A stretch of 64,000 bases of DNA. It comes from Podarcis bocagei (Eukaryota). The notes beneath the pieces are model-generated. The model was not told the DNA's origin. It was given only the letters and a program-made list of their open reading frames with translations, and ran no database searches. The stretch lies in assembly GCA_964188305.1 (NCBI GenBank), contig OZ076903.1; one strand, 5' to 3'. Position 1 is the stretch's first letter. Each line of letters opens with the position of its first letter. The translations under genes were made by a program, and so were the position numbers. Shown here one piece after another: positions 4,202 to 62,205 of the stretch.

Positions 4202-4638
4202 TGTAATAGGTATGAGTTACTCGTGAGTAAACTGGTGCCTTTCTCGGTTAATTTACCTTGCTAAACCTTTCTGACTGCACAGCCCCTTCTCATCGTGGCT
4301 GCCTCAGTCACTGGCAGAATCCGTCAGTGGCCGTTTCTTGAATCTCTTCCAACATAAAAGTTGTTTGACACCCAGTCTCCTCCTCCTCTCACTGCGCGGG
4401 AGTCTTCTGCGCAGGGAAGGCGTGGGTAGCGGAGGACCTGGGCTTTCCTCCCTGATGTCCAGTGAAGAGTCCTGGAGCCCTCTCTCCAATTCCCCCCGTC
4501 TGCCCCCCTTTATCCCCGGTGTTGCACTGATTGGCTTCCCCCTCTACTGAGCTGTTTCTCCCCCTGCTGCTGGGTCCTTCGCCAGCATCATCTGGGAGCC
4601 TCCCCTTCGCCTCTCCCTCCGATGTCAGTTCCCTGACA
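4202..4638 (-). mobile_element. Solo LTR (probably Gypsy-type) with peptide-coding U3
   Basis: TGT...ACA termini; 5-bp TSD TGTAT/TGTAC; GC-rich island in an AT-rich intron. Confidence 0.7.
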
Positions 4639-5987
4639 TGTACCAAAACCCAATCACAAATAACATTCTATCATGTTTATTTCAAGCTTCAAAAACCGTC
4701 CAGGATATCTGCACTGCTATTTGTTGCTGTCACAGTTTGTCTCCTAGTATGAAAACAAAAGTTTTCATATCGTGGCCAGAAAAACACAAAGTCTTTCTCA
4801 GTTGTGTGGGAACGTTAAAAATGTCTCTGCTTCTACAATTCTGATTCAAAGTCCAGAGTTTTGTTAAAATAACGGTCTGCATTTGGTAAATATACTTTGT
4901 ATGGGAATGCTGACAATTTGTAATAAATTTGTAATAAATTTTGTTCATGCCCAATAGGAAGGAATTCAATGTCGTGGTAAGGCAATTGTTCTCTTACGGC
5001 AAGCATTTTGGCTTGTTATAATAATAAATAATAAATAATAATAAATAATAATATTTTATTTATATCCCGCCCTCCCCAGCTGAAGCCAGGCTCAGAGCGG
5101 CTAACAGCAATAAAAGTTAACACAACATTCTAAAATCAATTCATTTTAAAATCAATTCAAATCAAATTAATGATTATATGGAAGAGTCCCCCCCCCTCCC
5201 GGCTGTTATAATGTTCTACTGGAGCCCTCCCCCAAAAAAATGCCAAGGGGGGGGAGGGAAACCCAGGGCAAAGAGAAGTAGGAAGAACCACTGTGCCAGC
5301 AGAATTATTATTATTATTATTTATTCAATTTATACACCGCCCTATACCCAGAGGTCTCAGGCTGGTTCACAAACAAGACCACAACATATAAAATCAAACT
5401 GATTCCTTGTGGAGGGGATCTTCCAGGGTGGGTCTCATCAGCTGAATCCCACCCAGAGTTCATCTCTGTTTAGCTAGAGAAAGGTGAAAGCCGACAATCA
5501 CTTTTAGCTATATCAACACTGACTGGTGCATTTCTGAAGTATTTGGTGATTAGACAGCAATTCAACGATGTTTCAAAGAAACATGGAAACCCAATTTTTC
5601 TTTGCCTTACGAATAGCACTGAGCCGTTTTTGTTTAACCAGATCATGGTTAAAATTTGACAGAGCCACTAAGGGGCAGATAACTGGCTTTGGGTGTTGGC
5701 TTTTCCCCACAGGCGGAAACAGGCCATCCCTGATTTAAAGCACAGCATAAGCTGTGGTCACTGGGAGGCTTTAGCAATGAACTGAGCTTAGCATGGCTAC
5801 CCTTTAGCAACTGCGGAGGAATTGAGAGGGAGCTCATAGCTGGAACCTCCAGACAACAGAAAATTCATACAGAAATGCAACTGTAGGGATCTTTTAAGTT
5901 ATGCCCGCATTGTGTTCGAAATTCGCCAGGTGCCAGGAGCATTTCACTTGCGACCAAGTGAAAATGCCTGGGCATCAAGATGGCGGC

Positions 5988-7280: not shown

Positions 7281-8220
7281 AGGTAAAGGTAAAGGACCCC
7301 TAGACGGTTAAGTCCAGAAAAAGGCGACTATGGGGTTGTGGCTGTGATGGCCTGGGAATCCGATTCAGAGGCTGAACCGGAGGAATCCCAGCCTGCACAG
7401 GAGTCCCCGCCTCCAGGGCCGGCTGAACTGGGGCAGGGCCTTGATTCTGAGGCGCCTGCACCTGTGCCGGATCCTCAGGAGCAGGCACCAGGTGAATCCA
7501 CTCTGGCTCCGGAGGTGGTTGAGGACTCAGTGCCTACAGGTGAGTCTCCCCCTGGGTCCAGTAACCCTTCAGCCTCTCCTGAACTGCAGAGGCTCAGGGC
7601 AGAGAGGCGAAGGGAACTGGTTTCTCCCAGGAGGAGTGCTCACCTTAAGGCCAGGAGAGGCGGGTCTCCTGGGGGCCGAGACCGCCCCTGGCCTCAGAGA
7701 AGATAAAGGCCAGCCAGCCCGGTCCCAGGTTGCAGGAGCAACGTCGTTGATGAGCTGTTTCAGCCAGCATCCAGTCCTGTTCCCCCAGAGTTCCTGTCCT
7801 TGCCCGGCTTCTGCTTTGCCCAAGGAGGACTGTCTGGCGACCCTCAACTCAGGTCCTGGACCTCGCCCCACGGTAACCTCCCCCCTGGACCAGCACAGTG
7901 GCACACATCTTGCTTTCAGGCCGAGGGAGCCGGCGTTTGTCCACAGACAGCTTTCCGGGTCATGTGGCCAGCACGACTAAACTGCTTCTGGTGAAACGGG
8001 ACACCGTGACGAGTGCCAGAGCACATGGAAATGCTGTTTACCTTCCCGTCGCTGTCATACCTATTTATCTACTTGCGCTGGTGTGCTTTCGAACTGCTAG
8101 GTTCGCAGGAGCTGGGACAGAGCAACAGGAGCTCACTCTGTCATGGGGATTCGAACTGTCAACCTTCCCATTGGCAAGCCCAAGAGGCTCAGTGGTTTAG
8201 ACCACAGCGCCACCCACGTC
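7281..8220 (-). mobile_element. Sauria SINE interrupted by the solo LTR
   Basis: Tail AAGGTAAAGG at left, tRNA-like head at right. Confidence 0.9.
7343..7897 (+). mobile_element. Solo LTR (555 bp) inserted in a Sauria SINE, with a 119-codon ORF in U3
   Basis: TGTGATGG...CCAGCACA termini; perfect TSD GTGGC (7338-7342 and 7898-7902) splitting a colinear SINE. Confidence 0.85.
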
Positions 8221-8599
8221 TCATCATGCCTCTGAATACCAATTGCTGGGAACAGCAGGTGCACTTCTGTCTGACTTGCAGGCTGCCCACAGTCATCTGG
8301 TTGGCCACTGGGAGAACAGGATGCTGAACTCGATGGCCCATTGGCCTGATCCAACAGGTCCTTCTTGGGTTCTTATAACTGGAGCTTTGCCACGGCTGCC
8401 TCTGCCAGCAGAATGGCAGCTCTGACCCATGTGGGCTCAATCCAGGTAGGAAGGCAAGGGAAACACATCACAGAAAACATAAAAAGCAGCTTAGACACTA
8501 TACACAACCCCATCACCTCTGGAAACACAGGAGCAGTAGTTGTTAACAACAACTGTTTCTGTTTGAGAATTCCAGGTTGATGCTTCTTGGGAGGAGTTA

Positions 8600-9499: not shown

Positions 9500-10660
9500 T
9501 TTCCAGCCACTTATTCTACATATTGTGGACAATTAATGTAAACTTCATCGTTTATATTCTTTGTTGCAACAGAAAAACTTTGGGCAATGCTTTGCTCCCA
9601 CACATCTTGAAGAAACCCTAAATGATAAAGACATTTAAAGGGATATTTTAACGGCATGCGCTTCTCAATGAGTGTTCTGCTTGAAATGTGGCACCCAAAA
9701 CTAGGAGCGCTACTCTAGATATGGCTCAACCAACACAGAACAGAGCAGAATGAATCCTTCTCATGATCTGAGATGCTTTTAATACAGTCTAAGATAACAT
9801 TAGCTTTTTTAGTAATCACATTGCACTCCTAGCTTAGATTCAACTAGGGCACCTAGATCCTTTTCACAGGTATTGCTGCCAAGTGGCAGGCCTCACCTAT
9901 ATAATAGTTGGTGCCTTGGGCACAGGTTGCACCTAAATGCAGCAACTGTAAACAAGTGGATTTGGGTAGATGCGGCTTGCCATGCAGGGATAAGAAAAAA
10001 ATGCAACTTCTGCACAACTACAGAAGATCAAGGAAATATCGTCCTCCTTTTGCTTGCTTTGTTTATTTGAAATCAGAGGTGCTCACTTCATAGACAGAGG
10101 GGTTACAAGTTTCTGTCAAGCATGCAAGTATGTGTGTGGTTAAAAAATAAACAAATCCCTATTTACAATCACAGCAATCTAATCTCCTGCTAAAAGAAGC
10201 TAAATCAGTGCAAGACAAAACTGCAGAAAGGACCATCTGAAATCCTTGTTAGTTCACATTAAGGTGTTGCACTAACCACATATTTGCAATAACGGAAGTG
10301 TTGTGTTTCCTAGGCAGCAGGGAAATGTACCTTTTGAAATAAGTTTCCCAAATGCTTGTGAGACAGGCGACAGTACACCTTGAGATAAGCTTGGCTCACA
10401 CTTATTAACTAGCATTGTAAGACAAAATCCCTTTTTTCGCTTATAGCAGCTGCAAGGCAGAGAGATGTTCAGCGAGCGTCTCTTTCCCCATCGCCACATC
10501 TCAATGCTAGGAAAAACTGCACCTGGAAAACCTCCACCTGCAGCAGAACTTGTGCCAGGACAAGCCAGCAGTCCTAATAGCTACTCAGTACAGTATCTCT
10601 CGCCTTGTACAATCATTGCTCCTTGGAGCAGGAGAACAACTTCGCTCTTACCTTTTAGCC

Positions 10661-10819
10661 CCAAGGTTTTCCAAACTTGGGTCTCTGGCAGTTTTTTTGG
10701 GGGGGGACTACAACTCCCACCATCCCCAGCTGGCAGGACCAGTGGTCATGGATGATGGGAATTGTAGTCCTAAAAACACAAACCAACAAGAGCTAGAGAC
10801 CCAAGTTTGGGAAACCCTG
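10661..10819. mobile_element. Palindromic hAT-type MITE
   Basis: Inverted termini; TTTAGCC flanks. Confidence 0.75.
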
Positions 10820-11049
10820 GTTTAGCCAAATCACCAGCAAGGTGGGGATTCCTGAGTTTTTATCATGCATTTCGTGATTCCGTATTGTGATTTATTTTTA
10901 ATGTTGGGAACCGCCCTGAGACCTGCGGGTAACAGGGCGGTACACTAATCATACTATTAATATTATTAATAATAAACACACACACCCTCCTTCCTCCCTT
11001 GCAAAACCAAACTGTTTGGGACCAACTCCCTCTCCTCCCATCTATTTCC

Positions 11050-11480
11050 CCTGCCAAGCTCCTCCAGCACAGGCAGCTCGCTGCCCCCACCGCGATTCCC
11101 ACGACCCCCTTCATACGTACCCCGTGTAGCTGCCAGTTACGAGCAACCCAGNNNNNNNNNNNNNNNNNNNNNNNNNNNNNNNNNNNNNNNNNNNNNNNNN
11201 NNNNNNNNNNNNNNNNNNNNNNNNNNNNNNNNNNNNNNNNNNNNNNNNNNNNNNNNNNNNNNNNNNNNNNNNNNNNNNNNNNNNNNNNNNNNNNNNNNNN
11301 NNNNNNNNNNNNNNNNNNNNNNNNNNNNNNNNNNNNNNNNNNNNNNNNNNNCGCGGGGGGGGGGGACGCCAGGCAAGGTTTTTCCCCATTTTATTTCCCG
11401 CCGTTTTTCGCGCTCTGCAGAAATGCAGGAACCGTTAAAGGGCTGGGGCTCTTGCCAAGGTGCACACGGCTATTTCTGCA
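11050..11480 (-). promoter_or_regulatory. CCDC171: Probable CCDC171 CpG-rich promoter and non-coding first exon (donor GTACGT after 11121), interrupted by a gap
   Basis: CpG-rich flanks on both sides of the N-run; minus-strand GGG|GTACGT donor; X-box-like GTTACGAGCAAC. Confidence 0.5.
11152..11351. other. Assembly gap (200 N)
   Basis: Run of N. Confidence 1.
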
Positions 11481-12998
11481 TACATTTCAAATAATAATTA
11501 TATAGAATATATTAGTTTGCTGGCAGTTGTGCAGAGCATTTTGCGCGAATAAATGGCATTCCGTACTGGTTATTGGAGCTGCGTTTGAGAAAGCAGCTAT
11601 GAAATTGTTTTTAGAAGATTTAAGCAAAGATCTGAGAGTTTCCTTTCTCGCTTTGGAATTTCGCTGAGCTTTTTAGATGTGTAATTTCCTAAATGCTTGC
11701 ATTGTTTTATGTTGCTTTCATTCTCTCAAATGACTTGGCAATTGTTATATTTTGTGTTGGAATTAAGCATTCTATGAGGTTGTTCCAACAACATTACCGT
11801 TAATGCATGTCTGAGGTTGGCGAATTGGGACCATGGGGGTTTAAAAAACGTTTGAGAATAATTACTGGCAACAGTACTAGATTTTTACCTAGGGACATTC
11901 AGGTTCTATTTATATTGAGGGTACTTTCCATCCAAATCGGTCTTTCATTTGATTGGTAACATACCTCCACAGATAAAATAGAAAACGTATTGTTTAGCAA
12001 ATCATTGTGACTACAATTTGCAAGTTGCATCACAGTGTTCAGGCCTGAATGAGGAATGAGAATCTATATATTATTAAGAGCATTGGACTTGGACTAGCGA
12101 GTAGTGGGTTTAATGTCCATTCAGTCATGAATCTCACAGGCTCTTGGTTTAACCTACCTTTCAGGTAGTAAACTTTCGTTCTTTTACAAAGTGTATGTGC
12201 AAGGTTTTGTGTCAGCGTCATGTGTTGAGTATTGTGCTTTTAGATTATTATATTTTGCCGGAACAGCAGGATATAAAGTATTATTATAATAATGCCCTCC
12301 TTAGTTGGGGGAGAAGGCAAGCTTCTGTGTGAAAAAGGAGACAGAATTGCAATGAACAGTCAAGGTGTGTATATTTTTAAGGAAGAGCAAATATTAGAGA
12401 ATTACAATAAGCTTACAGGTGACCTTCCAAAAGAAGCCAAATCCTGCCCCTTAGAATAGTGACGTGTGTCAAATGTAAGACTTTCTTCTGTTTACTGGGG
12501 CCAAAATCCTGTGTTTTTCCTTGTTTTACAGCGATCTAGGCAAGACAGGTACAGGAGCCCTGAGAGAACAAACGTTGGCAACGCAAGTAGACAGAAGGGA
12601 GTCAGCCCATATTCAACTTCTGCATATCCAGCTGGCCCTGCCTACCTACCCCAATTTCCCCTGAACCATCTACTGGGGTTTCTCACTTCTTCCAGCCACC
12701 TCCCACTAGTAACTACCTCTTGCCCTCAGCCACCCTGTCCATTTGTGACATCACAGGAAGTTTGTAGTCCGTGGCAACTGCTTAGGGATGCATCTGCACA
12801 GCTTCCCATCCTGGTATTGGAAAGAGGAATGTCATGAACGCTACTTAGATGTATTTAGAAATACCTTGATTTAGAAATAGAAGATGGCTTGCTTAATAAT
12901 AATAATAATAATAATTTATTATTTGTACCCCGCCCATCTGGCTGGGTTTCCCCAGCCACTCTGGGCGGCTTCCACAGAAACCAAAAAACACTAAAATA

Positions 12999-15900
12999 TC
13001 ATACATTAAAAGCTTCCCTGAATAGGGCCGCCTTAAGATGTTTTCTGAATGTCAGGTAGTTGTCCATCACCTTGACATCCGATGGGAGGGCATTCCACAG
13101 GGCGGGCGCCACCACCGAAAAGGCCCTCTGCCTGGTTCCCTGTAGCTTCGCTTCTCGCAATGAGGGAACCGCCAGAAGGCCCTCGGCGCTGGACCTCAGT
13201 GTCCGGGCAGAACAATGGGGGTGGAGACGCTCCTTCAGGTATACTGGGCCGAAGCCGTTTAGGGCTTTAAAGGTCAACACCAACACTTTGAATTGTGCTC
13301 GGAAACGTACTGGGAGCCAATGTAGGTCTTTCAAGACCGGTGTTATGTGGTCTCGGCGGCCGCCCCCAGTCACCAGTCTAGCTGCCGCATTCTGGATTAG
13401 TTGTAGTTTCCGAGTCACCTTCAAAGGTAGCCCCACGTAGAGCGCATTGCAGTAGTCCAAGCGGGAGATAACTAGAGCATGCACCACTCTGGCCAGACAG
13501 TCAGCGGGCAGGTAGGGTCTCAGCCTGCGTACCAGGTGGAGTTGGTAGACAGCTGCCTTGGATACAGAATTGACCTGCGCCTCCATGGACAGCTGTGAGT
13601 CCAAAATGACTCCCAGGCTACGCACCTGGTCCTTCAGGGGCACAGTTACCCCATTCAGGACCAGGGAGTTCTCCACACCAGCCCGCCCCCTGTCCCCCAA
13701 AAACAGTACTTCTGTCTTGTCAGGATTCAACTTCAATCCATTAGCCGCCATCCATCCTCCAACCGCCTCCAGGCACTCACACAGGACCTTCACCGCCTTC
13801 ACTGGTTCTGATTTGAAAGAAAGGTAGAGCTGGGTATCATCTGCATATTGATGGACACCCAGTCCAAACCCCCTGATGATCTCTCCCAGCGGCTTCATAT
13901 AGATGTTAAAAAGCATGGGGGAGAGGACGGAACCCTGAGGCACCCCACAAGTGAGGGCCCAAGGGTCTGAACACTCATCCCCCACCACCACTTTCTGAAC
14001 ACGGCCCAGGAGAAAGGAGCGAAACCACTGTATAACAGTGCCCCCAGCTCCCAACCCCTCTAGACGGTCCAGAAGGATGTTATGGTCGATTGTATCAAAG
14101 GCCGCTGAGAGATCCAGCAGAACTAGGAAACAACTCTCACCTTTGTCCCTAGCTCGCCGGAGATCATCAACCAGTGCGACCAAGGCAGTTTCAGTCCCAT
14201 GATGAGGCCTGAACCCTGATTGGAAGGGATCCAAATGGTCCGCATCCTCCAGGCGTGCCTGGAGTTGTTCAGCAACCACACGCTCAATCACCTTGCCCAA
14301 GAATGGAAGATTTGAAACTGGGCGATAGTTGGCCATACTGGCCGGGTCTAAAGATGGTTTTTTAAGAAGCGGTTTAATGACCGCCTCTTTCAGCGGATCT
14401 GGGAATGTTCCCTCACAGAGGGAAGCATTCACCACCCCGCAGAGCCCATCGCCCAGCCCTTCCCGGCTAGCTTTTATAAGCCAGGATGGGCAAGGATCAA
14501 GGAGACAGGTGGTTGGTTTCACTCGTCCAAGCAGCCTGTCCACATCCTCGGGGGTAACGGATTGAAATTGATTCCATGCAACTTGACCAGACAGGGCTCT
14601 AGCACTCTCCCGCCCCAGCCCTGCTCCCACGGTGGTGTCTAGCTCCTTCCGAATATGAGTGATTTTATCTGCAAAAAACTTTGCAAAATCGTTGCAGGAG
14701 ATCTTGGGGTCTTTACAAGGCCCCGATGGTAAAGGTGGTTCCGTTAAATTGCGGACCACCTGAAAGAGTCTCCTGCTACTATTTTCTGCAGATGCAATAG
14801 AGGCGGCGAAGAAAGTCTTCTTTGCCGTCGCTATCGCCACTTGGTAGGCTCGACGTTGAGCTCTAACCTGTGTCCGGTCAGATTCGGAGTGAGTTTTCTG
14901 CCACCGACGCTCTAGCCGTCTCAGCGATTGTTTCATCGCCCTCAGCTCCGAAGAAAACCATGGGGCTGTCCGGGCTCCATGCAATCGGAGAGGGCGCTTC
15001 GGAGCCAGACAGTCGATAGCCCTGGTTAACTCCGCATTCCAGCGGGCCACCAGGGAATCAGCTGAAAGGCCATCAACACGGGATAAAGCATCCCCTACCA
15101 CTCTCTGGAAACCATTTGGATCCATTAAGTGGCGGGGGCGGACCATCCGAATTGGTCCCACCTCCCTGCAGAGGGGAAGGGTCGCGGAGAAGTCCAGTTG
15201 CACCAGGAAGTGATCTGACCATGGCACTTCTTTGGTTTCATTTTTACTTAGTGTCAGATCACCCACGTCGCTAGAGGTGAATACCAGGTCTAAGGCATGT
15301 CCATGACTATGAGTTGGGCCCAACTTATTCAGGGACAGCCCCATGGAGGCCATGCTTTCCACGAAGTCCCGAGCGGCCCCTTGTAAGGTCGTGTCGGCGT
15401 GGATGTTAAAATCCCCTAGGACAACCAAACTAGGTGTCTCCAGGAGAACATCCGCCACGACCTGAAGCAGCTCGGACAGGGAATCCTTGGTGCAGCGGGG
15501 AGGTCGGTACACCAAAAGGAATCCTGTACTGCCCCTATTGCCCAACTTCCAGAACATGCACTCAGAAAACTGGGTCTTCCCAGTAGGACGCCTGGTGCAG
15601 ACTAATGACTTCCTAAAAATCACTGCAACCCCCCCTCCCCGCCCACATGACCTGGGTTGCTGTGCGTAAGAGAAACCTGGTGGGCAAGCGGCAGCAAGGA
15701 CGGGCCCATCTGTCTCATTCAACCAGGTCTCTGTCACACAAGCCAGGTCAAATCCTCCATCCACAATCAGGTCGTGGATGGCAGTGGTTTTATTCACTAT
15801 TGACCTGGCATTACACAGCAACACCTTCAGGTTATGTGGGTTTCCCCTGTTGATTCCAGTATCCATCTGGTCAAGGCCAGACCCGGAGGCAGGGATAGTC

Positions 15901-16031: not shown

Positions 16032-16321
16032 CGTGTTGGCTGGGGCCTCACTCCCAGGCAGCCCTGATCCCACCCCTTAAAAACAAAACACAAACTATAC
16101 AGAACCAATAAAAGAACAGAAAACAAAAACAGAACAATTACACTAAAATTAATCCCCAACCAAATATCCATTACACCCACCCACCCCCAGCAAGAGAAAA
16201 AAGGAAAAAAAGAAATACAAATTTAAATTGCCACCGACTGCTTGAGGACATTTTAAAACACATTGGAACAGGGAAGCAATTGCAGAACACTTCCCAGCTT
16301 CCCCAAAAGTTTGTTCCAAAT

Positions 16322-16904
16322 AAGGGCCTGGGCCATGCCCCCTGGGCCAGTTGGAGAAGGCCCTGGAAGGGAGCAGGCCCTGCAGTCCTCACCCAGCCGA
16401 TGGTCCGAGGCTTCCCTGCAGCAGGAGTCCCTTTATAGCCGGGAGAAAGGGCCTGGGCCACGCCCCCTGGGCCAGTTGGAGAAGGCCCTGGAAGGGAGCA
16501 GGCCCTGCAGTCCTCACCCAGCCGATGGTCCGAGGCTTCCCTGCAGCAGGAGTCCCTTTATAGCCGGGAGAAAGGGCCTGGGCCACGCCCCCTGGGCCAG
16601 TTGGAGAAGGCCCTGGAAGGGAGCAGGCCCTGCAGTCCTCACCCAGCCGATGGTCCGAGGCTTCCCTGCAGCAGGAGTCCCTTTATAGCCGGGAGAAAGG
16701 GCCTGGGCCACGCCCCCTGGGCCAGTTGGAGAAGGCCCTGGAAGGGAGCAGGCCCTGCAGTCCTCACCCAGCCGATGGTCCGAGGCTTCCCTGCAGCAGG
16801 AGTCCCTTTATAGCCGGGAGAAAGGGCCTGGGCCACGCCCCCTGGGCCAGTTGGAGAAGGCCCTGGAAGGGAGCAGGCCCTGCAGTCCTCACCCAGCCGA
16901 TGGT
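16322..16904 (-). repeat. Tandem array of ~4.7 x 125-bp near-identical units, each full unit with a GC box and TATAAA
   Basis: Units start at 16322, 16447, 16572, 16697 and 16822; TTTATA on the + strand at 16432, 16557, 16682 and 16807. Confidence 0.97.
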
Positions 16905-17779
16905 TAAGCTCTGCTGTCCCCTTCATTGCTGCTTTCGGGGAAAGCCTCGTTGGCTTGTGACATCCATGAAAGACAAACACAGATATGGTGAGGGGAATGA
17001 CCCTTGTTCAACAGTTATCATCCAAACACCTCCGTTGGCCAGCCTGCCAACCTCTGCTGGCTTCCACCCATGAATATCTACTGGTTCATTCGTCCAGAGC
17101 CTGGAGGGCAGCCTACACTGCTATCTGAACATGCAATTCCCAGGCATACTGTGTCTGGTGGATGACCTATGTCCACACTCTCCATTCATACTTACCCCAG
17201 CATCAGATGACAAATATCCACACAGCTTTTGTCAATGACCTTCTGAAGGTGAATTTCAACCAGCTTACGTGCACAAACTTCAGCCCTGCAGCATCCCGGG
17301 CTTCCACATGCTAATCACAGCTTCTGCCAGCTCCATCGCCAGCTTCCAACCATGGATATCTGCCGCTTTGAAGCCGCGGTCCTGCTCAGCAGGTACACTT
17401 GCCTTCTCATTCCTCCACAGCATCTCATTGACGGATGATGGCCTCCTTCCATTTGCCACTTCGCCTCCATGCGGAAGGAGATCACCAAGTACTGAATAAC
17501 ACAACTGTTGTCCACAGTGTCCTTTTCAAGCTTTGCCTTGGGCTTTCCCCTTGGGCCGCTTTTGTATATCCACTGAGCTGCCATGTGCTTATGTGACATC
17601 ACTGGGCGTCCACAGCCAATAACACCAGCTGGAGAGGCATCATGATCATCACCTCCTCAGGCTTCACAATGGTGGGTGCAGCTCAGCAGCCATTTGCCAT
17701 TTGCTTGTTTGCTATGTACAGCTCACTCCTTATTTATAATGACATCAGAAAAAGGCATGCCATAAATCCACCTTCCCAT

Positions 17780-21100: not shown

Positions 21101-21655
21101 ATCTCTGAATACATTCCAGTCCTGGCGATTGTTTTCCTTACAACAACTCTGTCAGCAGTGTGGAAATCACAAAAATGTGGGCGCAACTTTTTCCATTGCT
21201 GACACCTGCCACATTTCCACCTCCTTCACAGTTGTTGATATACTTCTTCTGTACAACTAAGCCATCCCTCCAACTTGCATATATTTTCCATCAGCACTTC
21301 TTCACAATGGCATCTCTAGCCATGCTCCCAAATGCACAGTTCAAAACCCCAGTCGATGGAGGCTAAACCAAGATTATAAGCACGGATTTCCTAAGTCAGA
21401 ACGACTTCTGTATTCGAACAGACAGCAGCTATCAGGCCGGAGGTCTTGCCTTTGACTTCCTTCGCCTGAGGGAGTGGGTTTGAGCTGGGGGTGCTAGTGG
21501 AAAAGAACAAGGTTGTAGCCGGGATTCTGCCCCCCTCCCTTACAACTGTAATCCTACTTACCCTTCCTTTAGACAGAATGCATAAGGTGTAGAGGACCAA
21601 GCCATAAGCAAGCATTTTGCTTTAATAAGTATGGCTCGTATACGTATAGCTTGAT

Positions 21656-22094
21656 CCTGCATACACCCTACACACTGTGATAATTATTGTAATAATTACT
21701 GTGATTATAAATTATTTTATTATTATTAATTGTAACAAAATTCTATGCACCCTATGCACTGTGATAATTATTGCAATAATTACTGTGATTATTTTATTAA
21801 TTCATGACCATTAATTGTAACAATAATATCCTATGCACCCTAAGCACTGTGATAATTATTGTAATAATTACTGTGATTATTTATTATTGCTTTTTGCTTA
21901 TTCTATTATTAATTGTAACAATATCCTATGCACCCCACGCTCTGTGATAACTATTGCAAAAATTACTGTGATTATTAAGTATTCTATTAATTTATGACCA
22001 TTAATTGCAACAATAATATCCCATGCACCCCACGCACTGTAATAATTAAATATTTTATTAATTATTTCATTGCTAATTAAAACAATTACTAATT
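21656..22094. repeat. AT-rich minisatellite, ~5 x 85-95 bp, directly upstream of the PSIP1 CpG island
   Basis: Recurring CTATGCACCC..CACTGTGATAATTATTG(T/C)AATAATTACTGTGATTAT. Confidence 0.9.
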
Positions 22095-29086: not shown

Positions 29087-30043
29087 CAGTGGTGCCTCGC
29101 AAGACAAAAAGAATCCGTTCTGTGATTCTCTTCGTCTAGCGGTTTTTTCGTCTTGCGAAGGAAGCCCATTGACGGATTAGCGCTATTAGCGGCTTTTAGC
29201 GGCTTATCTGCTGATCGGAACACCTGCCCCCACCGCCCCGCTTCGGAACGCTGCTCCGAAGCGGGGCGGGGGGGCGGGAACACCTGCCCCCACCGCCCGG
29301 CTTCGGAACGCTGCTCCGAAGCGGGGCGGGGGGGCGGGAACACCTGCCCCAGCCGCCCCGCTTCGGAACGCTGCTCCGAAGCGGGGCGGGGGGCGGGAAC
29401 ACCTGCCCCAGCCGCCCCGCTTCGGAACGCTGCTCCGAAGCGGGGCGGGGACACCTGCCCCAGCCGCCCCGCTTCGGAACGCTGCTCCGAAGCGGGGCAG
29501 GGGGCGGGGACACCTGCCCCAGCCGCCCCGCTTCGGAACGCTGCTCCGAAGCGGGGCGGGGGGCGGGGACACCTGCCCCAGCCGCCCCGCTTCGGAACGC
29601 TGCTCCGAAGCGGGGCGGGGGGGCGGGAACACCTTCTGAAGGCAGGCGGGGGGCGAAAGTCTTTGTCCCCCCTGCCTGCCTTCCCAGGGGCTTTTAAATC
29701 GCCCCGGACAGCGGAGAAGTCCTCCGCTGTCCCGGGGCGATTTTAAAATGCCGCCCGCCAGCATTTTAAGATCGCCCGGACAGCGGAGAAGTCCTCCGCT
29801 GTCCCGGGGTTTTTTAAAATGCTGGGGGTGGGAAGAAAAGCCCTTGTCCCCCCCCCCCCCCCAGCCTTCAGAAGAGGTCCGGGGACAGACTGTCCCCGGA
29901 CCTGGTCTGAAGGCGGTTTCCCTAGGAACGCATTAATTGATTTTCAATGCATTCCTATGGGAAACCGTGCATCACAAGACGAAAAACTCGCAAGACGAAG
30001 AGACTTGCGGAACGAATTAATTTCGTCTTGCGAGGCACCACTG
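29087..30043. mobile_element. TA-MITE family B (TIR CAGTGGTGCCTCGCAAGAC), long form carrying a GC-rich hairpin minisatellite
   Basis: Long TIRs and TA TSD. Confidence 0.88.
29216..29635. repeat. ~7 x 52-60-bp GC-rich minisatellite, each unit a hairpin
   Basis: Unit core CCGCCCCGCTTCGGA-ACGCTGC-TCCGAAGCGGGGCGG. Confidence 0.95.
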
Positions 30044-42271: not shown

Positions 42272-42471
42272 NNNNNNNNNNNNNNNNNNNNNNNNNNNNN
42301 NNNNNNNNNNNNNNNNNNNNNNNNNNNNNNNNNNNNNNNNNNNNNNNNNNNNNNNNNNNNNNNNNNNNNNNNNNNNNNNNNNNNNNNNNNNNNNNNNNNN
42401 NNNNNNNNNNNNNNNNNNNNNNNNNNNNNNNNNNNNNNNNNNNNNNNNNNNNNNNNNNNNNNNNNNNNNNN
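42272..42471. other. Assembly gap (200 N) hiding most of a PSIP1 exon
   Basis: Run of N. Confidence 1.
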
Positions 42472-46951: not shown

Positions 46952-48063
46952 TATTCTAATATTGCTTCTGAGACAGCAGGTGGCACCATTACATTATAAG
47001 AAGTCTGTGCTTCAAAATACACACCCAGTGCCTTGAAATAGCAGCCATTTAAAGTAATTAAAATTTCCAACAAAGCTTGATTGCAGGTCAGGTTTTGTCT
47101 TCTCTAGTCAATTGCAGATGGTTTACTTGTCTCAGTACTCCATGGGTCTTGATGGATTCTAGGTTAGCTTCCATTTGTATAGACCCCAGCCTGTAATTGC
47201 ATTGCTTATGGAACCATGGAGCCTGGATTTTATGCGTAATAGACTAGTGAAGAATATCCAGTGGCACTTTCTAACCTAGTTTTTCCAAGGATGATGGTTC
47301 CAGCCCTGTTATCTCTGTCTAAATTCCTCACACCTTTCTTCCATTCACTACATACTATGCTGCCATGGCCACCCAACTTCTATGTATGGAAGAGCAACAA
47401 TGCTCCTAGAAAAGGTCTGTTAGTGTCACAATTTCTCCTCCAGCCACACTCCAAAACTAAGCAAGGCTGGCTGTTTCAAAAACCATGCAGGTGAATGCTT
47501 AAGGGATAAAATCAACAGGTGCAGGAGGGACTAAGCACCCCTTACTGCCCACTGAATCTCTCTGCAAATGCCTGCCCTTATAGTGACTAAAATTTGCACG
47601 TCCTACAATCTCAGAACGACCAAATTTTTCATCAAACCCCTTTTATCTTTCAGTGTTACCTGCTAAAACTGAATTTACCTGTTACTTTCAGCAACAAATT
47701 CTGCTTAATCTGCATTTTTTGTGATTCCGCACCTCTGCAAAAAGCAACTATGTAGTAGAATGCTACAGGAGGAAGAATAAACATTACCGCTTAACATTTC
47801 CAGGGATGCTTATCTGCAGCTAGGTGTAAAAGTGCATAGACGATTACTGCCTAAAGCTGGGGACTGAATGAGTACTTCCATTGGCCTGGAAGAGAGGCTT
47901 GTTATCTATTTCCATGGCCAGCATACGCAGAATAAATGGTGAAAACTATAGAATCATAGAACACTGGAGTTCAAAGGGACCCCAAGTGTCATTAGTCCCC
48001 CCGAAAAGCAGGAATCTCAACATACCGTCCCCCATCCAATTTGACACCATGCATGTCTTCACA

Positions 48064-48422
48064 AGGGGCGCGGGTGGCACTGTGGGTTAAACCACAGAGC
48101 CTAGGACTTGCCAATCAGAAGGTCGGCGGTTCAAATCCCCATGACGGGGTGAGCTCCCGTTCCTCGGTCCCAGCTCCTGCCAACCTAGCAGTTCGAAAGC
48201 ACCTCAAAGTGCAAGTAGATAAATAGGTACTGCTCCAGCAGGAAGGTAAACGGCGTTTCCGTGCAGTGCTCTGGTTCGTCAGAAGCGGCTTAGTCATGCT
48301 GGCCACATGACCCGGAAGCTGTATGCCGGCTCACTCGGCCAATAAAGCAAGATGAGCGCCGCAACCCCAGAGTCGGTCATGACTGGACCTAATGGTCAGG
48401 GGTCCCTTTACCCTTTACCTTT
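48064..48422 (+). mobile_element. Full-length Sauria SINE
   Basis: tRNA-like A/B boxes, tail, TSD ATGTCTTCACA. Confidence 0.93.
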
Positions 48423-49324
48423 ATGTCTTCACAGAGCTCCGAGATTATATAGCTCTTTGTGTATAGACTGATTTGCAGTGAGAGGACACTCAGCCATGAT
48501 TATGAACAGCCATAGTTGTCAGGTGGACAGAGAAAACTCAACTGACAGTTCTTGATGAACCCAGAATATATTTATTTTTTAAAGGTGCTATTTTCCCACT
48601 ATACGGGCTTTGACTTTGTGACCACTTAAATGGTCATTAAACAAGTAGCCAAACACTAGTACCCAGCTGGTGTGAGAGAAATTTAATTAGAACCTGGCAG
48701 CTGGGTCCAATACCAGGTTTGACTCGGTGGACTCGTTCAAAAGAAAATACTAAATGAAAAACAGACCCATCTGTCCTGCAGAAGCTCCAGAGATTCATGG
48801 AATTAAGGGAGCAATGTTTTTCCCCTGTAATTTATCATTCATTGTGTAAACTCAATATAGCACTGAAGGTCACAGTATCTGGGGTGCAACAGGCGCAGCA
48901 ATAAAATATGATTTCAGTAACATACCCCTTTCGCCTTTAGGTGATGAACGGTCCGATACAAGTGATTTTCGCTCAGCATTCTAATGCCACGATTTACAAA
49001 ACGTAAAGCGAGCTTCCCTGCAGAAACGTATTTTTCCCTTTTCCAGGTTTCTGATTTGAGAGGCAACTTGACTGGACTCGAGATGAAGAAACTCAAAATG
49101 TAACTTGAAAAAAGACACACTGCACATACTTTTGTAAACCAATAAATCTTTAATAAAAAATATGTTTAAAAAAGAAGATGTAGATTCTTCCAGCTCGTGT
49201 AGCAATTCTAATGAAATTCTAGCTGAAAAGAACAACAACAGTTTTAAGTACAGCACTTGGGCTGTTCCAGCAGCTACAGAAGCACATCACGACGATGCCT
49301 GTTATCTTCCTTCTTGACAAAGCC

Positions 49325-53158: not shown

Positions 53159-53520
53159 CTGGGGGAAAGGGAGAAATACAAAGAGAGAAGAGGGGAAAGT
53201 ATTAGCTCGGCAACCAGCTTACCTCAAATACCACATCCTTCCTAATGTCTCATCTATATTCTCAAATACCAGTTAAGCGCATCATCTTAGCTGGGGGTGA
53301 GAAACCTGTGTTTCTCCTCAGGTTGTTGGACTCCAAGTCCTATCAGCCTCATCCAGCATCGCCCGTGGTCAGCAGGGATAGGAGCTGGGAGTCCAACCAT
53401 AATTGGAGAACCGCAGGCTCCTCATCACAGCAACACCTTCTGCAGCTCAAGTTGCAACCGCACAACTTTTCAAATATTTTTCTGTGTTGTTTTATTAGGC
53501 CCTTTCTAACTGTTCATTAA

Positions 53521-53873
53521 AGGGACGCGGGTGGCGCTGTGGGTTAAACCACAGAGCCTAGGGCTTGCCGATCAGAAGGTCAGCGGTTCGAATCTCCGCG
53601 ACGGGGTGAGCTCCCGTTGCTCGGTCCCTGCTCCTGCCAACCTAGCAGTTCGAAAGCACGTCAAAGTGCAAGTAAATAAATATGTACCGCTCCGGCGGGA
53701 AGGTAAATGGCGTTTCCGTGCGCTGCTCTGGTTCGCCAGAAGCGGCTTAGTCATGCTGGCCACATGACCCGGAAGCTGTATGCCGGCTCCCTTGACCAAT
53801 AAAGCGAGATGAGCACCGCAACCCCAGAGTCGGTCACAAGAGTACCTAATGGTCAAGGGTCCCTTTACCTTTA
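53521..53873 (+). mobile_element. Full-length Sauria SINE flanked by a ~105-bp direct duplication
   Basis: Head GGGACGCGGGTGGCGCTG and tail CCCTTTACCTTTA. Confidence 0.93.
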
Positions 53874-54403
53874 AGCTTCTCATCACAGCAATACCTTCTA
53901 CAGCTCAAGTTGCAACCGCACAACTTTTTAAATATCTTTTCTGTGTTATTTTATTAGGCCCTTTCTAACCGTTCATTAAGATTATGCTGGCCCTGTTGGT
54001 GACTGCCCCACAATTATCTGCCTCCCCTTCTTCAGGAAAGCCACCAGAGGGCAAGGCTGAGAATCCCTGGCAACAAAGGATCCTGGAACACTGTGTTCAA
54101 AATTAGCCAGGCCCCAGGCACATTTTGACCACTTGCGACCACGTGAAGATGCCCAGGTGCCAGGATGGAGCCTGACATCTCCAGCATCTGGAGCTGCATG
54201 CCTGGGCAATCCTTGGATCCTGACCAAAATGCTTTTTTTCCCTGTGCAGCCTGAGAAGGAACGGTGAGCAACGTTATATTTCATTGTTGTCGCTTGTCTT
54301 CACTTGCCTCGTCCAGCTGCAATGCTCACATTTGTGAAGAATATTCTTACGTTATGAATGATATGTGTCACCATTAAGAAAAAGAGGCCGGAGTTGGCCA
54401 ATA

Positions 54404-55734: not shown

Positions 55735-56995
55735 AATGACACCTTAGGTATTGAAGCTAATAAAAGTTCCAGTTCTTTATTCCAGTCCTCTTATAGTCTG
55801 CATATTGAACTTGAGTATTGCTAATAGATATCTATAAAAAGGAATTGCTGGATTTTTGTTTTTGAATGAGTTGCCCAATTACTCCAATATCTCAGGTATC
55901 TCAGAAGCTGAAAGGGCTGACAGCCCAAACACACTTGTTAGGAGATGTTGTAATTGAAGATATCGCCACTGGGCTGCATTTGATAGATGATATTTTTTGA
56001 CTTAAAATAGCAGAAGTATAACATTCATCTTCCCCATCTACCAGTTGGTCCAGTGTCAATACACCTGCTTCCATCCAATTTTTCCATATCACCCTCTTTT
56101 TTGCAATTCTTAGTACGGGGTTTCCCCACAGAGTAAATTTAGCATGTGAAAATGGATCAAATTAGTTTTTAGTAGCCAATATATTCCATATTCTTCTAAG
56201 TGATTAAATTGTTTCCAGAGTCACCTGAAATTTCAAATATTTCGATCCTAGTATTGTCCCACCAACCAAAGGTGCCATGTATATATTCTAGGGTTGCTCA
56301 CATCGGGAAATTAGGGCCAACTGTAGGATTCCAATATTTAGTACTTGACAGTAAGGTAAAGGTAAAGGGACCCCTGACCATTAGGTCCAGTCGTGACCGA
56401 CTCTGGGGTTGCGGCGCTCATCTCACTTTATTGGCCGAGGGAGCCGGCGTACAGCTTCCAGGCCATGTGGCCAGTATGACTAAGCCGCTTCTGGCGAACC
56501 AGAGCAGAACATGAAAACGCCATTTACCTTCCCGCCAGAGCGGTACCTATTTATCTACTTGCACTTTTTGGTGTGCTTTTGAACTGCTAGGTTGGCAAGA
56601 GCAGGGACCGAGCAACAGGAGCTCACCCCGTCGCAGGGATTCGAACCGCCAACCTTCTGATCGGCAAGTCCTAGGCTCTGTGGTTTAACCCACAGCGCCA
56701 CCCGTGTTACCTACTTGACAGTAGGTAAGCATAATGATATAATTCCAAATTGGGGATTCCGAAACCAACTTCTTTAATTTGTAGCTGCTTTCTCTGCAAG
56801 GATATTCTTGGTGTTGCTGAGCCCCAAAGGCATTTCCTAAACCGTTCATGTGCTGTTCTTAGAATCATATCTTTGGTTTCAGTGCAGAGATTTCCGCCAA
56901 TTAAGGCCAAGAAGTACTGTGGCCGTGAAGAGGCCTGCCATTTCCCACCCCTGCCTTCCTGTTAAGCAAATTTTAACCTTTCTATCTGTTTACTA
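55735..56995 (-). mobile_element. Degenerate L1-clade ORF2 fragment with nested SINE
   Basis: FLW..PRI....LQ.KEVGFGIPNLELYHYAY-like and WKNWMEAGV motifs. Confidence 0.7.
56354..56711 (-). mobile_element. Full-length Sauria SINE inserted in an L1 fragment
   Basis: TSD TACTTGACAGTA. Confidence 0.93.
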
Positions 56996-59712: not shown

Positions 59713-59910
59713 GAGCATTATCCTCCGTGAATTTATGAAAGCGCCTTTGAAATCTGTCTCAGTTGGTGACCACTGCCACACTCTGTGGCAGCCAAGACAA
59801 GGTTCAGATGTGCTATGTGAAGAAACTGTTCCTTAAATCATGCAAAGGATTGCATCATTAGTGGCGTTAGCCAAAAGTGCACTCAATAATGGAGAGAGGG
59901 AGAACACATA

Positions 59911-60275
59911 AAGGTAAAAAAAAGGTAAAGGACCCCTGGACGTTTAAGTCCAGTCAAAGGCGACTCTCGGGTTGCAGCGCTCATCTCGCTTTCAGGCCGA
60001 GGGAGCCAGCGTTTGTCCACAGACAGCTTTCCAGGTCATGTGGCCAGCAGGACTAAACTGCTTCTGACGCAACCGGACACCGTGACGGAAACCAGAGCAC
60101 ACAGAAACGCCGTTTACCTGCCCACCACAGTGATACCTACTTGCACTGGCATGCTTTCGAACTGCTAGGTTGACAGGAGCTGGGATAGAGCAACGGGAGC
60201 TCACCCCGTCACAGGGATTCAAACCGCCAACCTTCCCATCAGCAAGCCCAAGAGGCTCAGTGGTTTAGGCCACAT
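59911..60275 (-). mobile_element. Sauria SINE (variant subfamily)
   Basis: Similarity to the copy at 7281-8220. Confidence 0.88.
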
Positions 60276-60439
60276 AGTGAATTTATCAGCAAGGAAATGA
60301 ACACATGAGCAATGTGCAAACAATGTCAGAATAGCAGACATACTACTGAGGCGCCGACGCTGCGCTTGATAAGATGATTTAAATGCAAGGCGAAGGGGCT
60401 CAGTCGTTTAGACCACAGTGTCCCTAGAGAGAACAAGTA

Positions 60440-60681: not shown

Positions 60682-61236
60682 TACTCTAGGATGAGAGGGT
60701 GAGAAAAACCTCCCTCTTTCCATTGTGACTTGTTGAGTGCCCTGATTGCCAACAACACTAATGGCAGTACAACCGTATGCAGGTCTAATCAAAAGCAAGC
60801 CCCACTGGCTTAAATGGGTCTTTCTCCAAGGCAAGTGTGTTGAAGACTGCAGCCATCGTGTCTACTAAGCTCCATCGGGGCGCAGGGCAGGCATGCAATA
60901 TCTCTACTAAGCTTGACTAACCTGAACACTAACAGGCACACATGCCAGTGAAATAATTCTGACGCAAAGAGTTGTGGATCGCAGTACACAATAAAAGGCA
61001 TAAATATAAATGCCTTTTTGGTGAGTTTTGCAGGTTTTAAACATTGTAAGCATTTTTCCATTTTAAAGGCATTATTTGCAAAAACAGCATTCGGCGGGAT
61101 TTTTCCACTAAGGCTGTTGAACCTGTTAAGTTGATAGTCTAGACCACACGAAGTCCAAAGCACTCCAGTTTATTGCATTTGCCAGTTTGCCACATTATAT
61201 TAACTGTTTTATTTTAGTATTAGTATATGGAATTAG

Positions 61237-61570
61237 GGACGCGGGTGGCGCTGTGGGTTAAACCACAGAACCTAGGACTTGCTGATCAGAAAGTTGGCGG
61301 TTCGAATCCCCGCAACGGGGCGAGCTCCTGTTGCTGGGTCCCTGCTCCTGCCAACCTAGCAGTTCGAAAGCACGTCAAAGTGCAAGTAGATAAATAGGTA
61401 CCGCTCTGGCAGGAAGGTAAACGGCGTTTCCGTGCGCTGCTCTGGTTCGCCAGAAGCGGCTTAGTCATGCTGGCCACATGACCCGGAAGCTGTACGCTGG
61501 CTCCCTTGGCCAATAAAGCGAGGTGAGTCGGTCACGACGGGACTTAATGGTCAGGGTTCCCTTTACCTTT
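61237..61570 (+). mobile_element. Sauria SINE
   Basis: TSD TATATGGAATTAG. Confidence 0.93.
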
Positions 61571-62205
61571 TATATGGAATTAGAAATTCTTTTTCTATAA
61601 ATGATCAAACTCTGGCTCTGCTTTTTTATTTTTTAAAAAAGCACTTGCAATGGTTTCTTTGCTAGTAACCAGAACAATGCTATCAACTCCCTTCTTTCCA
61701 AACGGTATATATTGAAAACCAAACCCATTACTTCACCCACAAATCTGCACAAATTATTACAACACCATCGCCCTAAACAAGGCAGAATGAAGCAATATCA
61801 AGAGGAGTACATTCCCATCATCTTCAAATTGCAGAAGGCTCAGCCCATGAAAGAATGGAGAAATTTGCTAACAGGAGAGGCAGAACTCAAGCGATACTGG
61901 GAATATCTCTAATCTGATGTGGCAATCAACCCGGATAGATAAGGCATAGGGAGTGGCGATCCATGCTTTCCATCATTATCCAAAGTGCTGTCCTGGCCAT
62001 TACATAGCAGAAATTTCATTCTTGGCTAAGTCAAATTTAAAAAATGCAAAAAAATAATGGAGGACAGGCTTTGTTTTTTGTGTCAGTTCTACCAAAGACA
62101 TGGTAAGAGAAAAGAAAAAACCTGGTTAGCCACCCCGTATAGGATGAATGACCTCTGTTAGGACCAAACTCTGCAACCACTGGCCTTGAGGTCCATTTTC
62201 AGCGC

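Follow-up and report, generated by a model that had tools for sequence, protein, structure and literature searches.

The closest precedent for the element described here is found in plants. In the CRM chromoviruses of group A, the LTR encodes a targeting peptide at the integrase's C-terminus: the CR motif of the 3' LTR. CRM LTRs begin with TGATG (PMC3059260). These elements belong to another chromovirus clade, and their LTR-coded CR motif replaces the chromodomain, whereas the Podarcis element has kept a canonical chromodomain and added an LTR-encoded tail to it; the HMGN-type motif of this tail is absent from CRM, and the LTR peptides of the two elements show no sequence likeness.

In its general layout the Podarcis element resembles the Tf1/sushi group (Tf1 of S. 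pombe and sushi-ichi of fugu), with which it shares a single gag-pol frame, an integrase C-terminus made up of a Tf2-1-type SH3 domain and then a chromodomain, and target duplications of 5 bp. It probably also shares self-priming, since in a full-length copy (L001, see below) a decamer at the place of the primer-binding site can pair with the presumed start of the transcript. Self-priming is a known property of this group, and we know of no description, for Tf1/sushi elements, of read-through of a whole U3 or of an HMGN-like motif. A U3 region that doubles as protein-coding sequence also exists in retroviruses, where HIV nef and MMTV sag overlap the U3 of the 3' LTR; these are, however, separate accessory genes with mRNAs of their own, whereas the Podarcis frame directly continues pol.

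A second body of work bears on the encoded peptide. HMGN proteins (RRSARLSA), Dsup (RRSSRLTS) and Dot5 (RRSARIAT) bind the acidic patch of the nucleosome through three essential arginines (PMC12487698, PMC13347269). The Podarcis family resembles them in having RRSARLKA or RRSARLQA, with the three arginines, in a basic segment that is probably disordered. It differs from HMGN in lacking homology outside the motif and any match to the Pfam family HMG14_17; moreover, the carrier is here the integrase of a transposon and the binding is putative. A literature search revealed no paper uniting the acidic patch, a retrotransposon, an integrase and HMGN, and no report from a vertebrate of a pol frame that extends into the 3' LTR.

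Results

A solo LTR splits a SINE

Within the window, by which we mean the whole 64-kb stretch of Podarcis bocagei DNA that was analysed, positions 7343-7897 (plus strand) form a 555-bp solo LTR that begins with TGTG and ends with CACA. Its termini, its target-site duplication and the related LTRs of two other loci (L001 and L002) place it in a Podarcis Tf1/sushi-type chromovirus family (Ty3/Gypsy). The LTR is flanked by two copies of the pentamer GTGGC (7338-7342 and 7898-7902) and splits a minus-strand tRNA-type SINE, the 3' part of which lies at 7281-7342 and the 5' part, containing the tRNA-like head, at 7898-8222. In an alignment with five other SINE copies of the window, the left flank ends and the right flank resumes at one and the same point. 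GTGGC is a true duplication, since an uninterrupted paralogue of the SINE (59880-60300) has the position of the pentamer only once. The preliminary description of this DNA had called a solo LTR, and the continuity of the SINE paralogue across the insertion point, together with the GTGGC duplication, bears this out; its statements on the LTR sequence (the ends, ATG, TAA, peptide, GTGGC and lack of AATAAA) were likewise all found again to be correct. The LTR is considered solo because neither a second copy of it nor any gag or pol sequence occurs within the 64-kb window. AATAAA and ATTAAA are absent from both of its strands. With no pol upstream, and with the anchor arginine of its motif changed to histidine (see below), this particular copy is dead.

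The interrupted SINE belongs to a type that is very abundant on both strands of the window (for example 48050-48430, 53510-53890, 56340-56720, 59880-60300 and 61220-61600) and that dominates the mapped reads, the RNA reads reaching hundreds in each bin. Elsewhere, the window contains a tandem array of 125-bp units (16197-16946), about four adjacent units of which are identical, as judged from a two-unit reference stretch that is unchanged at the next two unit offsets. Two further tandem arrays lie at 29211-29679 (period of about 59 nt) and 21637-22071 (about 88-95 nt), and two runs of 200 Ns at 11152-11351 and 42272-42471. The region 4202-4638 shows an 85-codon minus-strand frame (4389-4646) from its TGTCAGGG end and no long frame from its plus-strand end.

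An open frame fills most of the presumed U3

The fifth base of the LTR is the first of an ATG (7347) that opens a frame of 119 codons, closed by the TAA at 7704-7706. This stop codon sits in a TATA-like GATAAAG (7702-7708), a box kept as GATAAAAG in both L001 and L002. The stop is the TAA of the TATA box in the window and in L002a, or a TAG nine bases earlier in L001 and L002b. On the basis of the comparison with P. muralis proteins and the selection tests described below, we read the stretch 7344-7706 (plus strand, GTG ATG ... TAA) as the relic of the 3' end of a Gag-Pol (integrase) frame; in full-length copies, the polypurine tract supplies the two bases that complete its first codon. With the U3 boundary placed at 7343-7731 from the TATA-like box and the presumed start of R, codons would occupy 363 of the 389 U3 bases (about 93%). 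The presumed first bases of R (7732-7741) read GCAGGAGCAA in the window and GCGGGAGCAA in the family, position 7734 being G in nearly all reads, and start 28-30 nt downstream of the window's TATA-like box. The remainder, R-U5 (7732-7897, limits again derived from this boundary), is non-coding, varies in length between copies in an alignment of five LTRs and has no canonical poly(A) signal. The RNA reads that cover the LTR are few, come from both strands and are swamped by the SINE; they include no transcript start, poly(A) site or read across the junction of tract and U3. The frame also contains, at Gly-Glu codons, a strong splice-donor-like site (CAG|GTGAGT, 7538-7546) that is not conserved in the divergent family, and the Ensembl model of a P. 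muralis protein (P0001) splices exactly there.

Taken alone, an open frame of 119 codons is within chance expectation. In Markov shuffles of the LTR, which has 63% G+C, 120 or more consecutive codons are free of stops in some frame in 64% of cases. The LTR itself has two other long open runs, one of 183 codons in a second forward frame and one of 108 in a reverse frame, and the frame that starts at the second base of the LTR is open equally far in about 6% of shuffles (P ~0.06). The significance of the frame comes from the comparison with other copies.

The Gag-Pol frame runs through the polypurine tract into the LTR

A word search with the 119-aa ORF gave one protein, P0001 of Podarcis muralis, in which a chromodomain leads into ..PDPRLRGGPGRGDGV and this in turn into MAWESDSE.., the latter part having 91% identity to codons 1-64 of the ORF. 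An exhaustive profile search gave eight matches, six of which were looked up and are, like P0001, all from Podarcis; among the eight is P0005, with twelve short matched stretches in a protein of 1,908 aa. A region search with a longer carrier led to P0012, the 90% cluster of which has 15 members. All these read-through proteins are translations from genome annotation, not sequenced proteins. Seven of them, all from P. muralis and spanning three subfamilies, join chromodomain, tract and LTR frame with no stop in between (P0001, P0008, P0012, P0019, P0024, P0025 and P0026). Five (P0012, P0019, P0024, P0025 and P0026) are unbroken from protease or gag via RT, RNase H, integrase, Tf2-1-type SH3, chromodomain and linker to the LTR frame, and finish with ..RDRPWP or ..RDRPRP, at the stop that belongs to the LTR itself; two of the seven are complete Gag-Pol polyproteins of 1,551-1,559 aa. 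In P0024 (1,559 aa), Pfam recognises RVP_2, RVT_1, RT_RNaseH, Integrase_H2C2, rve, SH3_Tf2-1 and Chromo, i.e. the chromovirus domain order with a C-terminal integrase chromodomain, and the tail makes up residues 1444-1559. The linker coded by the tract is in frame and conserved among the copies compared.

The preliminary description had proposed that U3 codes for a long C-terminal tail of the integrase or for a stand-alone peptide, and had named a Pol that stops before the LTR among the signs against this; the seven P. muralis proteins show the opposite, reading through the tract in a ..GDGV|MAW.. frame, with five of them reaching the natural end. Its broader premise, that many Ty3/Gypsy pol ORFs run into the 3' LTR, holds for the plant CRM elements, the sole documented case that we met.

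It could be argued that U3 instead carries a stand-alone accessory gene, in the manner of nef or sag, translated from the ATG at LTR bases 5-7 on a subgenomic or read-through RNA. The ATG is indeed invariant in all copies, annotation models often begin there (P0002, P0003, P0004, P0010 and P0011), and the selection tests presented below fit a fused and a separate product alike. However, the ATG forms part of the terminal TGTGATGG, whose role as the end of the LTR imposes a constraint in any case, and the LTRs of plant CRM elements likewise start with TGATG (PMC3059260). There is, moreover, no stop between the frame and pol in the seven proteins, the tract linker is in frame and conserved, and we saw neither a splice acceptor nor a promoter inside the element's frame. 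We consider a separate gene, which no observation requires, very unlikely.

A spliced N-terminal extension of Gag, made from the frame in the 5' LTR, has an even smaller chance of being correct. Four P. muralis models (P0002, P0003, P0009 and P0011) join the LTR frame to gag, and GT dinucleotides in good donor context occur within the frame, the site at 7538-7546 being an example. The junctions of the four models nevertheless all differ (after codons 79, 85, ~92 and ~114), as is typical of ab initio stitching, the donor-like site is not conserved in the divergent family, and gag has a start of its own, MADQAA. The U3 of the 5' LTR is, moreover, situated upstream of both the TATA box and the point where transcription presumably starts, and thus outside the element's own RNA. 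Because of this position, and since the junctions differ, we regard the four LTR-gag models as stitching artefacts.

The reading that we prefer, and hold to be very probably correct, is that the solo LTR at 7343-7897 belongs to a young Podarcis family of Tf1/sushi-type, presumably self-priming Ty3/Gypsy elements, in which the Gag-Pol frame runs past the chromodomain through the tract and nearly all of U3.

A full-length copy and a probable self-priming layout

DNA loci were obtained for two of the proteins: L001 of P. lilfordi from P0004 and L002 of P. muralis from P0010. The window LTR is 83-87% identical to LTRs of these loci, and its bases 1-415 are 87% identical to the LTRs of L001. In L001, two LTRs that are 99.2% identical (9997-10636 and 14998-15638), flanked by a CATAG duplication, enclose gag, RT, RNase H, the integrase zinc domain, SH3 and chromodomain, so that LTRs of this kind have been found in a pair around gag-pol, as the preliminary description had proposed to check. 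The L001 element (9997-15638) is young and has many internal frameshifts, and the G-run of its polypurine tract is one base short, which breaks the frame at the junction in this one full-length DNA copy; these defects may represent real decay or homopolymer errors of long-read sequencing. L002 contains a solo LTR with a TTCTG duplication and also L002a, an LTR that has diverged much further (51% identity of the peptide).

The sequence TTGCTCCCGC, located 3-12 nt past the 5' LTR of L001, is complementary to LTR bases 391-400 (an equally long match occurs in 2.4% of shuffles). The paired LTR bases are found 31 nt past the TATA box and belong to the block that is best conserved across all the copies. 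This complementarity, at that distance from the box, is what leads us to infer a start of R near window base 7732 and a self-priming layout as in the Tf1/sushi group.

The U3 frame bears the marks of purifying selection

To compare codon evolution among copies we aligned five LTRs and calculated dN/dS by the Nei-Gojobori method for six non-independent pairs of four copies from three lineages, leaving out the 5' LTR of L001. The values were 0.26-0.60 in this frame versus 1.17-3.09 in the two shifted frames. Counted by codon position, the window and L002a differ at 32/28/58 sites (binomial p = 2.7e-4), and the synonymous excess was significant in a Fisher test (p = 5.5e-9). All U3 indels between families (18, 18, 48 and 3 nt) are multiples of three, the lone exception in U3 being a 1-nt deletion private to the 5' LTR of L001, while downstream of the TATA box the five-LTR alignment shows indels of any length. 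The conservation of frame and codons for which the preliminary description had called is thus seen both in dN/dS, below 1 in frame and above 1 in the shifted frames, and in the between-family indels. We conclude from these sequence comparisons that the LTR frame has evolved as coding sequence under purifying selection.

These results also bear on the idea that the frame is non-coding and is open as a result of a GC-rich composition and of cis-regulatory constraints acting on U3. The frequency of long stop-free runs in the shuffles and the 183 open codons of the second frame are what one would expect under it. On the other side, the third-position excess, a dN/dS below 1 in this frame only, the 3n indels of U3 and the continuity with pol leave this explanation with next to no likelihood, and we retain a coding U3.

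The tail has an acidic part and a basic end

The first 78 codons of the tail (7347-7580, plus strand) include 17 acidic residues but not a single basic one (pI 4.05) and are rich in Pro, Ser and Ala; this part varies between families and has undergone in-frame indels. The last 41 residues, in contrast, include 14 Arg/Lys in the window copy and 12 in P0024, with a pI of 12. When the divergent family L002a is compared, the tail proves conserved at both ends and variable in the middle. The conserved PELQRLRAERRRELV segment (7578-7622, plus strand), kept in L002a, is the sole predicted helix of the tail, according to the prediction for the equivalent residues of P0026. AlphaFold2 gave the chromodomain a pLDDT of 85-92 and the tail values below 50, except for one weak helix (block mean ~59) over PDLQRLRAERRRELV, and the tail is thus probably disordered. 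Neither the ORF nor the two other open frames of the LTR matched any Pfam family, nor did four versions of the tail match any, including HMG14_17, at E up to 10; a PDB sequence search with the basic end of the tail also gave no match. We picture the tail as a disordered, acidic and Pro-rich linker leading to a basic end, which would consist of a short helix (LQRLRAERRREL) and the motif PRRSARLKA.

The family has an HMGN-like motif that is degenerate in the window

Codons 95-100 of the window copy (7629-7646, plus strand) read RRSAHL, which read counts, the comparison of copies and the literature on HMGN (PMC12487698, PMC13347269) identify as the degenerate form of an HMGN-like motif. The histidine codon is CAC (7641-7643) in the window and CGC (Arg) in most family copies, and every examined copy except that of the window, including the 51%-identical family, has RRSARL followed by KA or QA. 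We settled the Arg/His question by counting letters at the single position 7642, which is G in 88% and 95% of the contig depth of two organisms and in 71 of 76 RNA reads. The histidine had been suspected in the preliminary description to derive from arginine by a CpG-type G>A transition, and this is what the counts and the other copies indicate: in having CAC the window shows the minority letter, the product of a G>A change at a CpG, and the window copy has lost the arginine anchor.

The core RRS[AS]R[LI], with its three essential arginines, is accordingly present in all other copies and in most reads, and absent from the RRSAHL of the window. It arises in 1.7e-4 to 5.5e-4 of tail shuffles, a frequency to be read with the post hoc choice of the motif in mind. 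The family motif matches the HMGN core RRSARLSA at 7 of 8 positions and is nearer to HMGN than are the motifs of Dsup or yeast Dot5. As neither Pfam nor the PDB sequence search extends the likeness beyond the motif, the resemblance to HMGN is that of a short linear motif, probably convergent, not one of homology. HMGN2 on nucleosomes is reported to be modelled incorrectly by AlphaFold 3 (PMC12487698).

The most likely function of the tail, judging from the identity of the motif with those of HMGN, Dsup and Dot5 and from its conservation, would be an arginine-anchor contact with the H2A-H2B acidic patch alongside the chromodomain, a proposal to which we give a little less than even chances. The tail might instead be a coding one whose basic end serves only as a nuclear localisation signal or nucleic-acid-binding patch, with no contact to the acidic patch. 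Arg-rich clusters commonly act as import signals, and the number of Arg/Lys residues and the pI of the last 41 residues, given above, would suit such a role. On the other hand, RRSARL is kept exactly between families whose peptides are 51% identical, while the neighbouring basic residues vary (KARRGG, KARGGG, KAKRGG, QAKQGG). An exclusive role of this kind seems unlikely, though it is the most serious competitor of an acidic-patch contact, and nuclear import would be either the main alternative function of the tail or an additional one.

LTR pieces in Podarcis gene models

The RefSeq model of P. muralis LOC114604991 (L002 10001-11116; two isoforms, P0007/P0010) has as its first coding exon the whole ORF of a divergent solo LTR, and splices out at GGAG|GTGAGT, right after RRSARLQAKQGG; this first exon is either an exaptation or an annotation artefact. 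A V2R-like receptor model of P. lilfordi (P0004, L001 10001-34873) begins in the 5' LTR ORF of the L001 element, and a centrosomal, CEP63/Deup1-like model of P. muralis (P0006) contains a 45-residue stretch that is 61% identical to the middle of the tail. Pieces derived from the LTR are thus entering gene models.

Discussion

Our analysis leads to the following picture. An intact element has one Gag-Pol frame of about 1,550 codons with no stop after the integrase chromodomain; the frame passes through the polypurine tract, coding there for ..PDPRLRGGPGRGDGV, and through nearly all of the U3 of the 3' LTR, and ends at or just before the TATA box. In a genomic RNA of the presumed form R-U5-gag-pol-PPT-U3-R, U3 follows pol only at the 3' end, and it is for this reason that only the 3' LTR copy would yield protein, in the form of an integrase tail of about 135 aa. 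The arginine anchor of this tail on the H2A-H2B acidic patch, together with the chromodomain, would then hold the intasome on nucleosomes. The integrase of a vertebrate chromovirus would in that case have two nucleosome readers in series, a chromodomain and a U3-encoded anchor of the HMGN type, as a convergent means to tether or aim integration. This last proposal is tentative, and we think it somewhat more doubtful than the acidic-patch contact itself.

The family provides a case, in an animal genome, of a retrotransposon U3 that is coding almost in its entirety, a situation that we otherwise found documented only for plant centromeric elements. A single stretch of U3 has to serve at once as integrase attachment end, as the upstream region of the promoter and as codons. 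The tail is also a candidate for a contact between a vertebrate chromovirus integrase and chromatin beyond the chromodomain, and recent work suggests that a wider set of HMGN-like acidic-patch binders is still to be found. Finally, the family's solo LTRs look like first coding exons, and Podarcis gene models have already arisen from them, which matters both for annotation and for the birth of new genes. If the proposed function is true, the family would also spread across the genome, with each of its solo LTRs, an open frame that begins with ATG, codes for a nucleosome-binding peptide and could be captured as an exon.
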